Virus record (IMG/VR): IMGVR_UViG_3300005860_000274
Coordinates: 1-7,192 of that record
DNA length: 7,192 bases
Direction: 5' to 3' (one strand)
Positions 1 through 7,192 of the stretch are shown here, piece after piece. Below the pieces are notes generated by a model. It was not told where the DNA came from. It worked only from the letters and a program-made list of their open reading frames with translations, and made no database searches. The translations under genes and the position numbers were made by a program. Every line of letters begins with the position of its first letter. The first letter of the stretch is position 1.

Positions 1-328
1 AATAAGATCCTTGCTGGTGTGCATTTTAAATTTTATTGACTTTTCTTCCTGCTAGCGTGCAAAGTCAATCTTATTAAATCCTTCTTTTGCTGGTGTGCAG
101 AGGCTCTTTTATTGACATTCAATATTGCTCATGTGCACATATGAGGTTATTGAGCCACCATTTTGCTTGTGTGCATAATACTTATTATTGAACTATTTCT
201 CTTGCTTATGTGCGAACGGGTTATTATTAAACTTTTTCATTGCTTATGTGCATTTCTTTTCTTATCGAAACTTATAATTGCTTAAGTGCAAGATGAAACT
301 TATTGACTCTTGTTCTTGCTTGTGTGCA
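1..328 (-). repeat. TIGR-like dual-repeat array (mirror copy of 6865-7192)
   Basis: Reverse complement: recurring TGCTNNNGTGCA and TTATTGA at ~38-nt period. Confidence 0.9.
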
Positions 329-330
329 AA

Positions 331-1362
331 CTATTTAATAATCTTTTTCTTCTTAAGCCATGTTATTACCTCCTCTTTATTTATCCCTAACTCCTTTATT
401 ACTTTTTCAAACGTAGCTTTATATTTAGTTGTTTTAATATCAACGTAGTAATCATTCACTGGAGCAATTATAAAGTCTTCGTGTTTACTTATGACTTCGT
501 ATTCCTTACCCAAAACTACTTTGTAAGCCTCAGGCAATGGTACTCCTTCACGATAATGTAAAGAGATAGCAAAGTACTGTGATAATAGTAAGGATATTGC
601 TTTCCTGATAGCAGTTCTCTGTACTTTTAATTTAGGCCAGTCTGGGTGTTTAGATGCTATCTCCTCTTTGAAACTCTTTATTATCTTAGCATAAACACCG
701 CCAGCTAATATGAGGTTATTAGCCAGAATCCCCAGTAAAAACGTCTTAACAGTCCTGTTGTACTTAACATTTCTCGCTGATGTACCAATGAGTTTAGTAT
801 TATCATTGGGGCATAACCACCCGTCTTTAGAGGGAATGGCTGGTTTACCATTGCTTGACTCACCAGCGTAATAATAATATCCGCATTTAGGGCATGTAAA
901 CATCACTGCCAGTCCCGCATATTTCCTGAACTTATTGATATTATATTGGAATCTTGGAGGAAACGCATAAACGATAAGTCTTGCAGCGTTAGCTGGTCCT
1001 ATACCCCTAATAAATGCTAAGAAGTTGGTAAACTCTGGGAACTTGGTAACAGCATCCGCTATAAGTCCTTCAACTATTTCTTGCTGTTTAAGTAATTCCA
1101 TGTATCTTTGTACGAGTTCGTCCGACGGAGTTTCTTCAAGAATTCTGACTGGTTCACCGCATATTGGACACTTATCACGTTTTTCATCTTCCTTAAGCAA
1201 CACTAAATGATTATTCTTACATAACGAATATCTCCTGATAAAGATCCAACTGTTTTTCTCTTTTTTGGCACCTATTCTATTACCATATGCCACACGAAGT
1301 TTAATTAAGTCGTCTCTAAACGCTACAAGATCCCTTAAATTCACCAAATCTTTTTCACTCAT
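331..1362 (-). CDS. TasA-like IS110/Nop-related protein (mirror copy of 5831-6862)
   Basis: Identical translation in the inverted arm. Confidence 0.85.
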   Translation of the reverse strand: MSEKDLVNLRDLVAFRDDLIKLRVAYGNRIGAKKEKNSWIFIRRYSLCKNNHLVLLKEDEKRDKCPICGEPVRILEETPSDELVQRYMELLKQQEIVEGLIADAVTKFPEFTNFLAFIRGIGPANAARLIVYAFPPRFQYNINKFRKYAGLAVMFTCPKCGYYYYAGESSNGKPAIPSKDGWLCPNDNTKLIGTSARNVKYNRTVKTFLLGILANNLILAGGVYAKIIKSFKEEIASKHPDWPKLKVQRTAIRKAISLLLSQYFAISLHYREGVPLPEAYKVVLGKEYEVISKHEDFIIAPVNDYYVDIKTTKYKATFEKVIKELGINKEEVITWLKKKKIIK

Positions 1363-1508
1363 ATTTCCATCCCCTACATGGAAAAAAGAGAGAGGATTTA
1401 AAAAGTTTTCGGTGAGAGGTTGTGGTTGTAAGCTACCCCGCCTCAGAGAGGCAAGGTTTTCCGCCCCCTTAACCCCCATTTCTATAAAAGATCGGAAAAA
1501 GTACGGGC

Positions 1509-1871
1509 TTATTTTATTCTCTTCAAATGAAAAGGTTCGTATAACGGATTAGATGGTATCTCTTCATGAAGTTTCCTAATTCCTTTTTCTGAAATAACAT
1601 ATTTCTCAGCAAATAGAGTGTCTTCCCATGCTTGTAGACCTAGTTTCTCCCTCACTTCATCGAAAATAATTCTGTGTTCGTCATCACCTAACATCATACG
1701 TAATGCGAGTTGTTTATCTATATCTATGTCCTTAGGTAGAATTGCATATATATGCCAACCCTTTCTTGTAGTAAACGTATAAACTTTACAACCGATATAT
1801 TTAAGAAGAAAATATGCCCTCATGACTTGAAGTTGTGTAGGCTTATCAAAATCTAACTTTAATAGTCTCAT
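1509..1871 (-). CDS. Small AEP-like protein (mirror copy)
   Basis: Identical translation in the inverted arm. Confidence 0.6.
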   Translation of the reverse strand: MRLLKLDFDKPTQLQVMRAYFLLKYIGCKVYTFTTRKGWHIYAILPKDIDIDKQLALRMMLGDDEHRIIFDEVREKLGLQAWEDTLFAEKYVISEKGIRKLHEEIPSNPLYEPFHLKRIK

Positions 1872-1941
1872 AAATGAAATTTAAAGAGTGTGTATTTAAA
1901 GTTTTCCCTACATCTAGGGACGAGGCTTGCTGTTCGCTTCA

Positions 1942-2280
1942 TCAAATATGAAATAATGCCGAAATTATTATACCAATAGTTAAACTGATAGCAGACGAGA
2001 TGCCTGCGGATATAGATATCAGCTTTAACATCATACTATCTAACTGTGATATACGCTTATCGTATTCTTCAATCCTCTTATTCATTTCTTTAATTTCGCC
2101 ATTAAGAATATTATTAAGCGTGGAAATTTGGTTATGTAACTCGTTTAATTGTTCAGTGGTAGCCTTTAATTGTTGTTGAATTGATGCTATATTGTATATT
2201 AACCCATTAGTTACTCCAGAACCATATATTATTCTCTCTAGTTTCTCTATTCTATTTCTCAAATCATTCGTATCAGACAT
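1942..2280 (-). CDS. Coiled-coil/TM protein (mirror copy)
   Basis: Identical translation in the inverted arm. Confidence 0.85.
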   Translation of the reverse strand: MSDTNDLRNRIEKLERIIYGSGVTNGLIYNIASIQQQLKATTEQLNELHNQISTLNNILNGEIKEMNKRIEEYDKRISQLDSMMLKLISISAGISSAISLTIGIIISALFHI

Positions 2281-2928
2281 TCACACCACCTTTATGACTA
2301 AGTTAGGGAACGCCGTCGGCATACTAACGTTTGTTGTGAAATTGTATATTTTCACTACCCACGGTAGAGTAACTGGTGTAACGTTAAAACCAGTTTGTAA
2401 CATATAATCAAACCATTGGAATAAACACCAGAATACTAGATATGTATGTAACTTCTCTGGAGTTACTTCAACTAAATTATATATCAGTTGTTTTACACCA
2501 TTAAAACCGCCTTCTGCAATAGTGAGCTGGGAGTTAGGCGGTACTTGAAATACGAAAGCTACTATCTTATTATTAATCATACCAAGCGAATATGGAGGTA
2601 TATTATTAAGGTTTTGTATTGGAAAGCTGACTGTTTGCCCGCATATTTTACCAGCATAATCTGGATAATACGCATTGCCAAATGGATATGGTTCTACCGT
2701 GAAATTATCAAATACTGCACCCCTATAAATCACTACATATTTGGTTTCAGACGTACCGTTAGTGATTACCCAATTTACTATACCATTATTTTGATCCACG
2801 TTGGCAGATAATGTAAGTCCTTGAGCTGATGGATTAGAGATAAGTACTGGTTTTGGTAATTTGTGATGTATGTGAAAAGGTATTCTTTGCCTATAAAATA
2901 TCTTAAGCTTATGTATGATAGCCATCAC
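2281..2928 (-). CDS. Hypothetical 215-aa protein (mirror copy)
   Basis: Identical translation in the inverted arm. Confidence 0.8.
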   Translation of the reverse strand: MMAIIHKLKIFYRQRIPFHIHHKLPKPVLISNPSAQGLTLSANVDQNNGIVNWVITNGTSETKYVVIYRGAVFDNFTVEPYPFGNAYYPDYAGKICGQTVSFPIQNLNNIPPYSLGMINNKIVAFVFQVPPNSQLTIAEGGFNGVKQLIYNLVEVTPEKLHTYLVFWCLFQWFDYMLQTGFNVTPVTLPWVVKIYNFTTNVSMPTAFPNLVIKVV

Positions 2929-2970
2929 TAATATGGAAACATTAAATATAAAAAGAATTTCTTGGAAATT

Positions 2971-3168
2971 TTAGGCTACAAGAGATAGTAAGAATATACC
3001 AATAATTATTAGAACTAGACCTCCGAAACCTTCTAGTAGACCTACTAAATTCTTTATTATCATATACCCTCCTAGTCCTATAAATACTACAGCAATAGCC
3101 GCTATTGCTGCCTTTCCATATGGCGAAGATGTAATTGAATCGACCAAATTTGAAACACTTTCACTCAT
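2971..3168 (-). CDS. Small two-TM membrane protein (mirror copy)
   Basis: Identical translation in the inverted arm. Confidence 0.75.
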   Translation of the reverse strand: MSESVSNLVDSITSSPYGKAAIAAIAVVFIGLGGYMIIKNLVGLLEGFGGLVLIIIGIFLLSLVA

Positions 3169-3287
3169 TGTACATCATTAGTTACGAAACACAAGAAAAT
3201 AAAAAGTTTTCTTTTATTCATCCACACTTTTATTAAAAGGTTTTAAATATTTTCTAAAAAATAGATTATCAAAAAATAAATAACTTT

Positions 3288-3569
3288 TCAAGAATTAAAA
3301 TGCTTGAATATGTATGTTATACCGACCGCTACTAATATTAGTCCTATGATGAATGAGAGTGTTGCGAATCCTACTGTTGAGAATAATGAAAGGATGAAGA
3401 ACGACGATACTGAAAGAAGCACTTCAACGGACCATGCTAATCCGTGAACTATTATTGAATATTGGTTTTTGCTACTAAGAGCAGCACGCTGAGTGAATAT
3501 AGCTAAAACACCAAATATTAGTTCTACTAAAACGATATAGATGGATACTATTGCTGATATCATTTGCAT
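3288..3569 (-). CDS. Small three-TM membrane protein (mirror copy)
   Basis: Identical translation in the inverted arm. Confidence 0.7.
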   Translation of the reverse strand: MQMISAIVSIYIVLVELIFGVLAIFTQRAALSSKNQYSIIVHGLAWSVEVLLSVSSFFILSLFSTVGFATLSFIIGLILVAVGITYIFKHFNS

Positions 3570-3626
3570 CAATAATATATTATCACATCAATAATATATT
3601 ATTGATGTGATAATATATTATTGATG
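3567..3626. repeat. Nested repeats at the palindrome centre: three ATAATATATTAT 12-bp palindromes at 19-bp spacing
   Basis: ATAATATATTAT at 3572, 3591 and 3610. The 17-bp direct repeat ATAATATATTATTGATG occurs at 3591-3607 and 3610-3626. Confidence 0.85.
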
Positions 3627-3905
3627 CAAATGATATCAGCAATAGTATCCATCTATATCGTTTTAGTAGAACTAATATTTGGTGTTTTAGCTATATTCAC
3701 TCAGCGTGCTGCTCTTAGTAGCAAAAACCAATATTCAATAATAGTTCACGGATTAGCATGGTCCGTTGAAGTGCTTCTTTCAGTATCGTCGTTCTTCATC
3801 CTTTCATTATTCTCAACAGTAGGATTCGCAACACTCTCATTCATCATAGGACTAATATTAGTAGCGGTCGGTATAACATACATATTCAAGCATTTTAATT
3901 CTTGA
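3624..3905 (+). CDS. Small membrane protein with three predicted TM helices; ~93 aa
   Basis: Three hydrophobic segments, followed by T-rich terminator-like sequence. The start is ambiguous (TTG 3621, ATG 3624 or ATG 3630). Confidence 0.7.
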   Translation: MQMISAIVSIYIVLVELIFGVLAIFTQRAALSSKNQYSIIVHGLAWSVEVLLSVSSFFILSLFSTVGFATLSFIIGLILVAVGITYIFKHFNS

Positions 3906-4024
3906 AAAGTTATTTATTTTTTGATAATCTATTTTTTAGAAAATATTTAAAACCTTTTAATAAAAGTGTGGATGAATAAAAGAAAACTTTTTATTTTCTT
4001 GTGTTTCGTAACTAATGATGTACA

Positions 4025-4222
4025 ATGAGTGAAAGTGTTTCAAATTTGGTCGATTCAATTACATCTTCGCCATATGGAAAGGCAGCAATAGCGGCTATTG
4101 CTGTAGTATTTATAGGACTAGGAGGGTATATGATAATAAAGAATTTAGTAGGTCTACTAGAAGGTTTCGGAGGTCTAGTTCTAATAATTATTGGTATATT
4201 CTTACTATCTCTTGTAGCCTAA
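4025..4222 (+). CDS. Small membrane protein with two predicted TM helices; 65 aa
   Basis: Two hydrophobic Gly-rich stretches (AAIAAIAVVFIGLGGYMII; GFGGLVLIIIGIFLLSLVA). GAAAACTTTTTA promoter-like motif at ~3982-3993. Confidence 0.75.
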   Translation: MSESVSNLVDSITSSPYGKAAIAAIAVVFIGLGGYMIIKNLVGLLEGFGGLVLIIIGIFLLSLVA

Positions 4223-4264
4223 AATTTCCAAGAAATTCTTTTTATATTTAATGTTTCCATATTA

Positions 4265-4912
4265 GTGATGGCTATCATACATAAGCTTAAGATATTTTAT
4301 AGGCAAAGAATACCTTTTCACATACATCACAAATTACCAAAACCAGTACTTATCTCTAATCCATCAGCTCAAGGACTTACATTATCTGCCAACGTGGATC
4401 AAAATAATGGTATAGTAAATTGGGTAATCACTAACGGTACGTCTGAAACCAAATATGTAGTGATTTATAGGGGTGCAGTATTTGATAATTTCACGGTAGA
4501 ACCATATCCATTTGGCAATGCGTATTATCCAGATTATGCTGGTAAAATATGCGGGCAAACAGTCAGCTTTCCAATACAAAACCTTAATAATATACCTCCA
4601 TATTCGCTTGGTATGATTAATAATAAGATAGTAGCTTTCGTATTTCAAGTACCGCCTAACTCCCAGCTCACTATTGCAGAAGGCGGTTTTAATGGTGTAA
4701 AACAACTGATATATAATTTAGTTGAAGTAACTCCAGAGAAGTTACATACATATCTAGTATTCTGGTGTTTATTCCAATGGTTTGATTATATGTTACAAAC
4801 TGGTTTTAACGTTACACCAGTTACTCTACCGTGGGTAGTGAAAATATACAATTTCACAACAAACGTTAGTATGCCGACGGCGTTCCCTAACTTAGTCATA
4901 AAGGTGGTGTGA
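4265..4912 (+). CDS. Hypothetical protein, beta-rich composition (N/V/T/P/Y), possibly a virion or surface protein; 215 aa
   Basis: Long ORF in the co-directional gene run. TTTTATAT TATA-like box at ~4241. Start is GTG 4265 or ATG 4268. No family recognised. Confidence 0.8.
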   Translation: MMAIIHKLKIFYRQRIPFHIHHKLPKPVLISNPSAQGLTLSANVDQNNGIVNWVITNGTSETKYVVIYRGAVFDNFTVEPYPFGNAYYPDYAGKICGQTVSFPIQNLNNIPPYSLGMINNKIVAFVFQVPPNSQLTIAEGGFNGVKQLIYNLVEVTPEKLHTYLVFWCLFQWFDYMLQTGFNVTPVTLPWVVKIYNFTTNVSMPTAFPNLVIKVV

Positions 4913-5251
4913 ATGTCTGATACGAATGATTTGAGAAATAGAATAGAGAAACTAGAGAGAATAATATATGGTTCTGGAGTAACTAATGGGTTAATATACA
5001 ATATAGCATCAATTCAACAACAATTAAAGGCTACCACTGAACAATTAAACGAGTTACATAACCAAATTTCCACGCTTAATAATATTCTTAATGGCGAAAT
5101 TAAAGAAATGAATAAGAGGATTGAAGAATACGATAAGCGTATATCACAGTTAGATAGTATGATGTTAAAGCTGATATCTATATCCGCAGGCATCTCGTCT
5201 GCTATCAGTTTAACTATTGGTATAATAATTTCGGCATTATTTCATATTTGA
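4913..5251 (+). CDS. Coiled-coil protein with C-terminal transmembrane anchor; 112 aa
   Basis: Heptad-like L/I periodicity (IQQQLKATTEQLNELHNQISTLNNIL...) followed by a hydrophobic C-terminus. The ATG directly follows the upstream TGA, with an AGGTGGTG Shine-Dalgarno-like motif. Confidence 0.85.
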   Translation: MSDTNDLRNRIEKLERIIYGSGVTNGLIYNIASIQQQLKATTEQLNELHNQISTLNNILNGEIKEMNKRIEEYDKRISQLDSMMLKLISISAGISSAISLTIGIIISALFHI

Positions 5252-5286
5252 TGAAGCGAACAGCAAGCCTCGTCCCTAGATGTAGG

Positions 5287-5300
5287 GAAAACTTTAAATA
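5287..5300 (+). promoter_or_regulatory. Archaeal BRE + TATA promoter of the AEP-like gene, probably giving a leaderless mRNA (mirror 1893-1906)
   Basis: GAAAAC-TTTAAATA, with the TATA box starting 29 nt before ATG 5322. Confidence 0.7.
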
Positions 5301-5321
5301 CACACTCTTTAAATTTCATTT

Positions 5322-5684
5322 ATGAGACTATTAAAGTTAGATTTTGATAAGCCTACACAACTTCAAGTCATGAGGGCATATTTTCTTCTTAAATATATCG
5401 GTTGTAAAGTTTATACGTTTACTACAAGAAAGGGTTGGCATATATATGCAATTCTACCTAAGGACATAGATATAGATAAACAACTCGCATTACGTATGAT
5501 GTTAGGTGATGACGAACACAGAATTATTTTCGATGAAGTGAGGGAGAAACTAGGTCTACAAGCATGGGAAGACACTCTATTTGCTGAGAAATATGTTATT
5601 TCAGAAAAAGGAATTAGGAAACTTCATGAAGAGATACCATCTAATCCGTTATACGAACCTTTTCATTTGAAGAGAATAAAATAA
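5322..5684 (+). CDS. Small archaeo-eukaryotic primase (AEP/prim-pol)-like protein, catalytic core only; 120 aa
   Basis: LLKLDFD fits AEP motif I (hhhDhD). TTRKGWHIY fits motif II (S/TxxGxH). LGDD supplies a candidate third acidic residue. It has its own BRE/TATA 29 nt upstream. Confidence 0.6.
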   Translation: MRLLKLDFDKPTQLQVMRAYFLLKYIGCKVYTFTTRKGWHIYAILPKDIDIDKQLALRMMLGDDEHRIIFDEVREKLGLQAWEDTLFAEKYVISEKGIRKLHEEIPSNPLYEPFHLKRIK

Positions 5685-5715
5685 GCCCGTACTTTTTCCG
5701 ATCTTTTATAGAAAT

Positions 5716-5765
5716 GGGGGTTAAGGGGGCGGAAAACCTTGCCTCTCTGAGGCGGGGTAGCTTAC
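5716..5765 (+). mobile_element. GC-rich hairpin resembling an IS200/IS605-family terminal palindrome (solo end/remnant; mirror 1428-1477)
   Basis: CCTTGCCTC-TCT-GAGGCGGGG stem-loop (5737-5757, two G-T pairs) followed by TAGCTTAC, in a GC-rich patch within AT-rich DNA. The resemblance to IS200/IS605 ends is from recall. No tnpA or tnpB is present. Confidence 0.45.
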
Positions 5766-5782
5766 AACCACAACCTCTCACC

Positions 5783-5797
5783 GAAAACTTTTTAAAT
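5783..5797 (+). promoter_or_regulatory. Archaeal BRE + TATA promoter of the tas-like gene/array (mirror 1396-1410)
   Basis: GAAAAC-TTTTTAAAT about 35 nt upstream of ATG 5831. It matches the archaeal purine-rich BRE followed by TTTAWA. Confidence 0.65.
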
Positions 5798-5830
5798 CCT
5801 CTCTCTTTTTTCCATGTAGGGGATGGAAAT

Positions 5831-6862
5831 ATGAGTGAAAAAGATTTGGTGAATTTAAGGGATCTTGTAGCGTTTAGAGACGACTTAATTAAACTTCGTG
5901 TGGCATATGGTAATAGAATAGGTGCCAAAAAAGAGAAAAACAGTTGGATCTTTATCAGGAGATATTCGTTATGTAAGAATAATCATTTAGTGTTGCTTAA
6001 GGAAGATGAAAAACGTGATAAGTGTCCAATATGCGGTGAACCAGTCAGAATTCTTGAAGAAACTCCGTCGGACGAACTCGTACAAAGATACATGGAATTA
6101 CTTAAACAGCAAGAAATAGTTGAAGGACTTATAGCGGATGCTGTTACCAAGTTCCCAGAGTTTACCAACTTCTTAGCATTTATTAGGGGTATAGGACCAG
6201 CTAACGCTGCAAGACTTATCGTTTATGCGTTTCCTCCAAGATTCCAATATAATATCAATAAGTTCAGGAAATATGCGGGACTGGCAGTGATGTTTACATG
6301 CCCTAAATGCGGATATTATTATTACGCTGGTGAGTCAAGCAATGGTAAACCAGCCATTCCCTCTAAAGACGGGTGGTTATGCCCCAATGATAATACTAAA
6401 CTCATTGGTACATCAGCGAGAAATGTTAAGTACAACAGGACTGTTAAGACGTTTTTACTGGGGATTCTGGCTAATAACCTCATATTAGCTGGCGGTGTTT
6501 ATGCTAAGATAATAAAGAGTTTCAAAGAGGAGATAGCATCTAAACACCCAGACTGGCCTAAATTAAAAGTACAGAGAACTGCTATCAGGAAAGCAATATC
6601 CTTACTATTATCACAGTACTTTGCTATCTCTTTACATTATCGTGAAGGAGTACCATTGCCTGAGGCTTACAAAGTAGTTTTGGGTAAGGAATACGAAGTC
6701 ATAAGTAAACACGAAGACTTTATAATTGCTCCAGTGAATGATTACTACGTTGATATTAAAACAACTAAATATAAAGCTACGTTTGAAAAAGTAATAAAGG
6801 AGTTAGGGATAAATAAAGAGGAGGTAATAACATGGCTTAAGAAGAAAAAGATTATTAAATAG
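5831..6862 (+). CDS. IS110/Nop-domain-related RNA-guided protein without RuvC (TasA-like, TIGR-associated), with two zinc-ribbon insertions; ~343 aa
   Basis: It begins directly at the IS110-like coiled coil (LRDLVAFRDDLIKLRVAYGNRI). It has FIRGIGPANAARL...KFRKYAGL (Transposase_20/Nop-like), YNRTVKTFLLGILA, RTAIRKAISLLLS and a YREGVPLPEAY...KH tail. There is no N-terminal DEDD RuvC domain. I place the start at ATG 5831 rather than 5714 because a BRE/TATA (5783-5796) and a purine-rich GGGGATGG lie just upstream. A dual-repeat array abuts the stop codon. Confidence 0.85.
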   Translation: MSEKDLVNLRDLVAFRDDLIKLRVAYGNRIGAKKEKNSWIFIRRYSLCKNNHLVLLKEDEKRDKCPICGEPVRILEETPSDELVQRYMELLKQQEIVEGLIADAVTKFPEFTNFLAFIRGIGPANAARLIVYAFPPRFQYNINKFRKYAGLAVMFTCPKCGYYYYAGESSNGKPAIPSKDGWLCPNDNTKLIGTSARNVKYNRTVKTFLLGILANNLILAGGVYAKIIKSFKEEIASKHPDWPKLKVQRTAIRKAISLLLSQYFAISLHYREGVPLPEAYKVVLGKEYEVISKHEDFIIAPVNDYYVDIKTTKYKATFEKVIKELGINKEEVITWLKKKKIIK

Positions 6863-6864
6863 TT

Positions 6865-7192
6865 TGCACACAAGCAAGAACAAGAGTCAATAAGTTTCAT
6901 CTTGCACTTAAGCAATTATAAGTTTCGATAAGAAAAGAAATGCACATAAGCAATGAAAAAGTTTAATAATAACCCGTTCGCACATAAGCAAGAGAAATAG
7001 TTCAATAATAAGTATTATGCACACAAGCAAAATGGTGGCTCAATAACCTCATATGTGCACATGAGCAATATTGAATGTCAATAAAAGAGCCTCTGCACAC
7101 CAGCAAAAGAAGGATTTAATAAGATTGACTTTGCACGCTAGCAGGAAGAAAAGTCAATAAAATTTAAAATGCACACCAGCAAGGATCTTATT
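6865..7192 (+). repeat. TIGR-like dual-repeat/dual-spacer guide RNA array, 38-nt period, truncated at the window end
   Basis: Repeat 1 (T/C)GCACNNNAGCA(A/G) starts at 6865, 6903, 6941, 6979, 7018, 7056, 7094, 7132 and 7170. Repeat 2 TCAATAA (variants TCGATAA, TTAATAA) starts at 6887, 6925, 6963, 7002, 7040, 7078, 7116 and 7154. They are separated by unique 9-nt segments (one is 10 nt). Confidence 0.9.

Follow-up and report, generated by a model that had tools for sequence, protein, structure and literature searches.

A probable TIGR-TasA system with zinc ribbons in the Tas protein on a contig of a Sulfolobales virus

The order of edge repeat, first spacer (A), loop repeat and second spacer (B) defines the dual-repeat TIGR arrays, for which repeats of 8-12 nucleotides (nt), spacers of 9 nt and 5-15 or more units have been published (Faure et al. 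2025). Among the Tas proteins, TasR and TasH are DNA-cutting enzymes with a RuvC or HNH nuclease at the N-terminus. TasA proteins such as MbTasA and FpTasA, which binds 36-nt tigRNAs, are solo Nop-domain proteins that have a coiled coil but lack a nuclease domain; their genes lie beside a dual-repeat array whose units each hold two 9-nt spacers, and the proteins have the Tyr/His loop typical of dual-repeat systems. RNA-guided target binding and reversible transcriptional repression have been reported for MbTasA, and the dual-repeat Tas proteins are portrayed as compact and as varying only minimally (Xu et al. 2026 preprint). Archaeal viruses are listed as TIGR hosts, and the array of Acidianus tailed spindle virus (ATSV) is cited as an earlier sighting of a TIGR-like array (Faure et al. 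2025). Here we describe the entire IMG/VR contig IMGVR_UViG_3300005860_000274 (7192 nt, the window in what follows), in which a gene for a protein of 343 amino acids (aa), tasA, is followed by an array of this kind. With a probability of about 0.88 we consider the locus a TIGR-TasA system of a Sulfolobales virus, i.e. a nuclease-free Tas protein with a two-spacer guide array. A sequence-only reading of the window had proposed a TasA-like TIGR system, and this proposal is supported by fold, family profile, array anatomy and the conserved linkage of gene and array, as well as by the absence of a nuclease, a conserved dyad and a strand asymmetry of the arrays.

In kind, the locus is already described. 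ATSV_B343 (KU645528), likewise of 343 aa, is 83% identical to the window protein, and the protein of Sulfolobales virus YNP1 (KP282679) is 82% identical. Since the window locus is a relative at 83% identity of the ATSV locus cited by Faure et al. 2025, it represents a new member of a known system. The ATSV gene is followed by an annotated repeat_region (9232-10146, 915 bp). The ATSV and YNP1 arrays start 1-9 nt past the stop codon, and their edge and loop consensus and their 38-nt period are identical to those of the window. All spacers differ, however, and the upstream genes are unrelated, homology being seen from the start codon of tasA on. The neighbours of the window gene are rudivirus/lipothrixvirus-like, unlike a large spindle virus, and its array is cut by the contig end. 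Neither accession is listed in the accessible part of the supplement text of Faure et al. 2025, and no paper specifically on TIGR systems of Sulfolobales viruses was found in the literature searched. At a distance of 1.5 kb downstream from its TIGR array, ATSV has a second annotated repeat region (L001 9510-9799, equivalent to ATSV 11703-11992), which bears the label 'possible viral CRISPR locus' but does not contain the TIGR edge motif.

Compared with the described TasA systems, the unit of the window measures 38 nt instead of 36 nt, with a 13-nt edge and a 7-nt loop repeat. The protein has zinc ribbons at the tip of the coiled coil and at the wedge position as well as a C-terminal extension of two helices, its host is a thermoacidophilic archaeal virus, and its sequence stays under the NCBIfam cut-off and is missed by Pfam. 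Zinc is unmentioned in both TIGR papers. We regard the two zinc-ribbon insertions, the 38-nt unit with 13/7-nt repeats and the rudivirus/lipothrixvirus-like gene neighbourhood as mildly new.

Fold, family and domain layout of the Tas protein

An AlphaFold2 model of the 343-aa protein, based on an alignment of 26 family members, was confident, with a predicted local distance difference test (pLDDT) of 89.4 and a predicted TM-score (pTM) of 0.83. When this model was compared with the PDB using Foldseek, the top 17 matches were all TasR, TasH or IS621/ISCro4, and the match after these had E >1. TasR came first with 9MTY (E 4e-5), the TasR-tigRNA-DNA complex of the founding paper (Faure et al. 2025), and TasH was represented by 9W04, 9VZX, 21KL and 9W03. 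The modelled fold is of the Nop type, in line with the IS110/Nop-like protein of the sequence-only reading. In a BFVD search the ATSV orthologue ranked first (TM 0.98), ahead of Tas-like phage proteins: one whose annotation reads IS116/IS110/IS902-family transposase and, third in rank, one of 309 aa that is probably SpTasH.

Whereas a single-sequence search of the PDB gave nothing useful, the family profile alone retrieved TasR as the sole significant PDB sequence (E 1.3e-4). SpTasH, whose sequence we located in Salicola phage CGphi29, had no significant match with the shallow family alignment in hhalign, and therefore a deeper profile was needed for this link. A search of 1.84 billion representatives yielded 307 relatives, of which 59 remote ones were sampled. 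The profile of the window protein together with these 59 matched TasR at 1e-51, TasH at 1.5e-30 and IS621 at 2e-4; PF02371 was present in 13 of the 59. The best NCBIfam match is NF052498 (TIGR_Tas_endo; TIGR-Tas system RNA-guided endonuclease), with an E-value of 3e-13 over model positions 2-212 of 215. Structure and profile agree that TasR (9MTY) and TasH (9W03/9W04) are the best matches; they have the GIGP/YAG core and the coiled coil in common with the window protein, and TasH also the Tyr/His region. IS110-family bridge-RNA recombinases (IS621, ISCro4) possess a homologous RNA-binding domain and coiled coil, but the window protein is without DEDD/RuvC, and there is no single two-loop bridge RNA and no element ends; the guides are instead arrayed, in tens. 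The expectation that such a protein would normally be mis-annotated as an IS110 transposase did not hold, as Pfam found no Transposase_20 in it at E<=1 and the public names of the family are hypothetical, DUF1610-type Zn-ribbon, rubredoxin and similar. No family members were recovered from a scan of 185,579 species genomes, which was limited by the patterns used.

The start codon of tasA deserves attention, since a longer reading of the open reading frame (ORF) from 5714 would give 382 aa. This reading is unlikely, because the close homologues and ATSV_B343 all start at the methionine of MSEK. Moreover, DNA homology to the other loci begins at about 5827, so that the 343-aa ORF from 5831, as named in the sequence-only reading, is right. 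A purine-rich GGGGATGG directly precedes this start. Further upstream we recognised a putative archaeal B recognition element (BRE)/TATA element, GAAAACTTTTTAAATCC, based on the Sulfolobales promoter consensus; a scan for bacterial (sigma-70) promoters and terminators is not applicable to archaea.

The order of domains (Table 1) begins with a coiled-coil helix. In the wider profile the two helices of the hairpin align with the coiled-coil region of TasR, and by analogy with TasR the hairpin is presumed to be a dimerisation arm. The GIGP...YAGL core aligns with TasR 140-213, and G120, G122 and G150 correspond to G148, G150 and G177 of SpTasH. The GIG (G120-I-G122) and YAGL (Y148-L151) motifs noticed earlier are indeed present, with G120, G122, G150 and L151 invariant in the family. 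At the site of zinc ribbon 2, TasR is gapped in the profile alignment and has a short DNA-strand-separating wedge loop; by this correspondence, zinc ribbon 2 may play the role of the wedge.

No RuvC or HNH nuclease domain was found in the model, in Pfam or in NCBIfam, and the absence of a RuvC/DEDD domain suggested by the sequence-only reading is thus confirmed; the modelled helix begins at residue 3. A RuvC or HNH domain would find no space in the protein, which is therefore assigned to TasA. We also weighed a cryptic HNH domain in zinc ribbon 1 but discarded it, since this insertion is all-beta without a helix and has no HNH match. As neither insertion contains a helix, a hidden beta-beta-alpha-metal nuclease is unlikely.

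Anatomy of the array, its linkage to tasA and predicted guide processing

The first edge repeat begins at 6865, 2 nt past the tasA stop codon. From there, the edge anchors are spaced 38, 38, 38, 39, 38, 38, 38 and 38 nt apart, and 9-10 nt after the ninth edge the contig ends. The pattern TGCACNNNAGCAA-N9-TNAATAA, with <=2 mismatches, was found in 7/8 units per arm of the contig (see below), against a mean of 0.01 matches in 200 shuffles; the eighth, non-matching unit has a 10-nt spacer, which is rare. Consequently, the at least 8.5 two-repeat units counted in the sequence-only reading are present as eight full units and a partial ninth. To define the unit, we pooled 13 related loci, which provided 168 distinct units of 38 nt, and evaluated the position-wise information; this gave the layout in Table 1. 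Except for 28, the 177 distinct spacer pairs are each confined to one locus, and those of the window are all unique. The edge repeat shows internal TGC...GCA complementarity at invariant positions, reminiscent of the two solitary base pairs that have been reported in the edge repeat of TasR. CRISPR-Cas loci have one repeat of 25-36 nt, spacers of ~30 nt and cas genes, in contrast to the 13/7-nt repeats and 9-nt spacers seen here; cas genes are absent from the window.

The array lies directly 3' of the gene and on the same strand in 16/16 loci, down to 62% identity; these include 12 IMG/VR loci, the window among them, and three loci from metagenomes that belong to the 62%-identity clade. Adjacent arrays are therefore kept by the homologues. 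The first edge, which is sometimes degenerate, usually follows 1-2 nt past the stop codon in the related loci, and their arrays reach up to about 46 units. In a more distant Tas homologue (37% identical), encoded in the sister metagenome 3300005861, the dual-repeat array is a different one and lies upstream of the gene, again at a contig end (L028 1-250). Its period is 40 nt, and its repeats, TGTAATACACA and TGTAyAACAGA, both start with UGU and end with ACA/AGA.

Three features support transcription of the array from the + strand, as far as this can be judged from DNA. Within 11.5 kb of arrays, the + strand has two tracts of T5+, an archaeal termination signal, and the - strand has 44, although, given 42% A in the arrays, the T5 deficit does not significantly exceed what composition predicts. 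Secondly, in 7/11 complete arrays of related loci the last edge is truncated on its 3' side (TGCAC..), which agrees with the published TIGR arrays; the window array, being cut by the contig end, is not among them. Thirdly, T5-6 tracts on the + strand follow several of the related arrays. It had also been claimed that no promoter lies between gene and array and that co-transcription is likely. Co-transcription is plausible, but the claim has to be weakened, because the last tasA codons (AAGAAAAAGATTATTAAATAG) resemble an archaeal BRE/TATA element, gene and array are separated by a T-tract and a TATA-like stretch in L021 and L022, two divergent loci, and the one distant array lies upstream.

How could guides be released from such a transcript? 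In SpTasH, Y289 and H296 in a C-terminal loop catalyse metal-independent cleavage of pre-tigRNA (PMC13421893), and this Y/H dyad is reported to be conserved among dual-repeat systems (Xu et al. 2026 preprint). Alignment to a common profile with hmmalign placed Y280 on SpTasH Y289, H294 on H296 and P301 on P302. Since Y280 and H294 align with the catalytic pair and are invariant in the 26 family members, self-processing of the pre-tigRNA by the window protein is predicted.

Table 1. Features of the tasA-array locus and of the remaining window. Positions are nucleotides of the window unless residues or unit positions are given.
Feature	Position	Strand	Remarks
tasA	5831..6862	+	343 aa; nuclease-less Tas protein, Nop-type guide-RNA-binding fold; ATG at 5831, TAG at 6860-6862
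Putative BRE/TATA element GAAAACTTTTTAAATCC	5783..5799	+	~35-45 nt upstream of tasA ATG
Coiled-coil hairpin, presumed dimerisation arm	5837..6145	+	helices 3-30 and 81-105 (model)
Zinc ribbon 1	residues 31-78		tip of coiled-coil arm; all-beta; C48, H52, C65, C68 invariant; weak Zn-ribbon Pfam matches
GIGP...YAGL helix-hairpin core, Nop/Transposase_20-like	6188..6283	+	residues 120-151
Zinc ribbon 2	6290..6430	+	residues ~154-200; all-beta; C157, C160, C184, D187 invariant
Helical C-terminal domain	residues 203-291		model/alignment
Loop	residues 292-311		model/alignment
Two extra C-terminal helices	up to residue 343		model/alignment
Y280...H294 loop	6668..6712	+	predicted metal-independent pre-tigRNA processing dyad
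TIGR dual-repeat array	6865..7192	+	8 units (38 nt, one 39) and partial ninth; cut by contig end
Edge repeat TGCACAyaAGCAA	unit 1-13		conserved except middle positions 7-8
Spacer A	unit 14-22		9 nt; near-zero information
Loop repeat TCAATAA	unit 23-29		7 nt; conserved
Spacer B	unit 30-38		9 nt; near-zero information
Mirror of tasA and array	1..1362	-	exact reverse complement of 5831-7192
94-aa ORF	3621-3905		no informative family match
65-aa ORF	4025-4222		no informative family match
215-aa ORF	4265-4912		phrog_6678; 29-37% identity to 45 rudivirus and lipothrixvirus genomes
112-aa ORF	4913-5251		no informative family match
120-aa ORF	5322-5684		matches Sulfolobales Beppu filamentous virus 3 (SBFV3)

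Targets, rival explanations and a possible mechanism

Several observations weigh against the assignment as a TIGR-TasA system. The NF052498 score of 50 bits is under the curated cut-off of 100, while the SpTasH control reached 119 bits, and Pfam gives no Tas-related match for the 343-aa protein, only weak zinc-ribbon matches. Repeats of 13 and 7 nt are slightly outside the published range. Furthermore, in TIGR-Tas systems edge and loop repeats alike have a box D-like start and a box C-like end (UG...CCA in TasR), which covary between the two. Here the symmetry of the boxes is partial: U..AA is common to both repeats, but the edge has UG..CAA and the loop UC..UAA. In the 37%-identical relative both repeats read UGU...AC/GA, which is consistent with edge-loop covariation across the family.

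The search for targets was negative as well. We assumed a target composed of spacer A and the reverse complement of spacer B, an order of our own derivation that was chosen because only A + rc(B) gives the published 3' overhangs. Allowing 0-1 mismatch, none of the 177 spacer pairs was matched in the 160 kb of sequence from related loci, in the complete genomes of ATSV and YNP1 or in the window. The counts with 2-3 mismatches in these sequences equalled those of shuffled controls, the opposite order searched in the same set gave nothing above chance, and three exact 18-mers of the window were without a match in IMG/VR.

Could the guides act on RNA instead? This would make the locus a TIGR-Tas relative that works like a box C/D small ribonucleoprotein (sRNP), its 9-nt spacers blocking or marking host or viral RNAs. 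Archaeal hosts use box C/D guides heavily, and the Nop fold and, at least in part, the two-spacer guide with box C- and box D-like flanks (box C - spacer - box D) are common to the window locus and the archaeal box C/D sRNP (Nop5-fibrillarin-L7Ae); the spacer searches, moreover, identified no DNA target. Yet the model contains no fibrillarin-binding N-terminal domain, and the repeats contain no K-turn-forming boxes, RUGAUGA/CUGA being absent. There is no Pfam match to Nop and no Rfam match in the array, and the guides, unlike those of the sRNP, are arrayed and virus-encoded, with DNA as the presumed target. According to the literature TasR is inactive on RNA substrates, and TasA has been shown to bind DNA and to repress transcription. 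We therefore give RNA-directed guides little credence.

A shade less probable still is a function of the repeats at the DNA level, as iterons or as a centromere-like or origin array that the zinc-ribbon protein would bind directly in double-stranded form for partition or replication of the viral genome, with no guide RNA involved. Fixed 9-nt variable segments that are unique to each locus are unexpected for iterons, and both the strand asymmetry and the terminal 3'-truncated edges point to an array that is transcribed and processed. The fold and the best profiles, too, are those of guide-RNA-binding Tas proteins, with the RNA-processing dyad conserved. These points outweigh, in our opinion, the two zinc ribbons of the protein, the position of the array next to its gene as in partition cassettes, the occasional operons of TasA genes with ParB-like genes in the literature and the lack of spacer targets.

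That the locus is a decayed or truncated IS110-family element, with a transposase remnant minus its DEDD domain and functionless repeats derived from degenerate bridge-RNA or terminal sequences, is the least credible explanation, for the weak IS110 matches (NCBIfam IS110 model positions 122-260, 27 bits; transposase PHROGs) and the structural similarity to IS621 and ISCro4 are set against a family conserved over its full length of 343 aa (87 invariant columns in 26 members, no frameshifts), a DEDD domain in 0/59 of the sampled remote relatives, far better scores of TasR and TasH than of IS621, and long regular arrays, which are no IS110 feature.

For the TIGR-TasA system we infer, in all its steps, the following mechanism. 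Transcription of the array on the + strand would come either as read-through of tasA or from the TATA-like element in the last codons of this gene. A TasA dimer would then bind the transcript, one protomer at the loop repeat (UCAAUAA) and the other at two half edge repeats, and Tyr280/His294 may cut in the variable middle of the edge to release 38-nt tigRNAs of the form ..AGCAA-N9-UCAAUAA-N9-UGCAC... By homology, one such tigRNA per TasA dimer would bind 18 bp of DNA, where spacer A would pair with one strand and spacer B with the opposite strand of the adjoining 9 bp. Being nuclease-less, the complex would stay on the DNA and could block transcription or replication of the host, of a rival element or of the virus itself.

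The palindromic contig, its gene neighbourhood and the meaning of the locus

The whole window is a perfect palindrome, in which the arms 1-3596 and 3597-7192 are 100% complementary with 0 nt between them. The mirror copy of tasA and array noticed by the sequence-only reading is present as an exact reverse complement, but it is no independent second copy: because the whole contig is palindromic, the same locus is written twice, and this does not count as independent evidence. Both contig ends break within the TIGR array. We lean, by roughly two to one, towards a fold-back artefact of amplification or assembly. It is possible, alternatively, that the palindrome stems from hairpin-telomere read-through or from a head-to-head replicative junction of a linear virus; a real telomere or junction of this type would explain its perfection. 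A 20-mer scan of metagenome contigs directed at this question gave chance-level matches only. The centre, between 3596 and 3597, has no central loop and lies inside an AT-only natural palindrome of 12 nt, ATAATATATTAT. This sequence recurs 19 nt to the left, and it is located ~27 nt upstream of the ATG of the 94-aa ORF in the manner of a TATA box.

Five ORFs lie between the palindrome centre and tasA, and they resemble the flanks of other tas loci neither in DNA nor in protein sequence. The matches of the 215-aa ORF in 45 Ligamenvirales genomes are often located a few kb from the genome end and point inward; a related-locus scan with this protein recovered the window alone. Two of the 94-, 65- and 112-aa ORFs encode small hydrophobic, membrane-like proteins, and the third a coiled-coil protein that ends in a hydrophobic C-terminal tail. 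When the products of four window ORFs were looked up as exact proteins, nothing was retrieved. Among the cultured rudiviruses and lipothrixviruses of the phage collection this Tas protein was not found, tblastn returning only ATSV and YNP1. Neither tRNA genes nor Rfam families were detected in the half-window, apart from a sub-threshold small nucleolar RNA match (E 0.47) that was dismissed.

Two further sequence elements were observed. A GC-rich stretch of 46 nt (5712-5757) in the otherwise AT-rich contig is 96% identical to positions 177-222 of OP999031, Sulfolobus tengchongensis spindle-shaped virus 4; ARAGORN detected no tRNA fragment in it. A GC-rich motif, CGGGGAGGA(A/G/C)GTCAG, often located in a hairpin, occurs on both strands of ATSV-like contigs (L001 7974; L006 1649/4381/6710; L008 2445/9030; L028 576; L023 ~7100-7145), frequently just past TIGR arrays or ahead of tas. 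Probably this motif represents a terminator-like or repeated element of intergenic regions, without specificity for TIGR.

The upstream flanks of the other tas loci form at least three further groups. The tasA-array cassette thus resides in several different backbones. A broader proposal, which we find doubtful as a whole, would treat the zinc-ribbon TasA clade as a distinct, thermostable subtype restricted to Sulfolobales viruses, with a cassette that is mobile among unrelated virus backbones and that is separated here by ~2.2 kb from a genuine hairpin telomere or from a head-to-head replication junction. The backbones in question may be ATSV-like spindle viruses, YNP1-like elements and, in the window, a rudivirus/lipothrixvirus-like linear genome.

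The window locus leaves the picture of the family, which was defined in 2025, unchanged and extends it by a further TIGR-TasA of an archaeal virus. It is of use chiefly for annotation, as the clade comprises 71 clusters in public data that are labelled hypothetical, Zn-ribbon or rubredoxin. The 177 spacer pairs without a detectable target pose again the question of what TIGR systems aim at. The presence of the same cassette in at least four viral backbones bears on the spread of TIGR modules, and a nuclease-free Tas protein with zinc ribbons from a hyperthermophile could serve as a robust DNA-binding scaffold.

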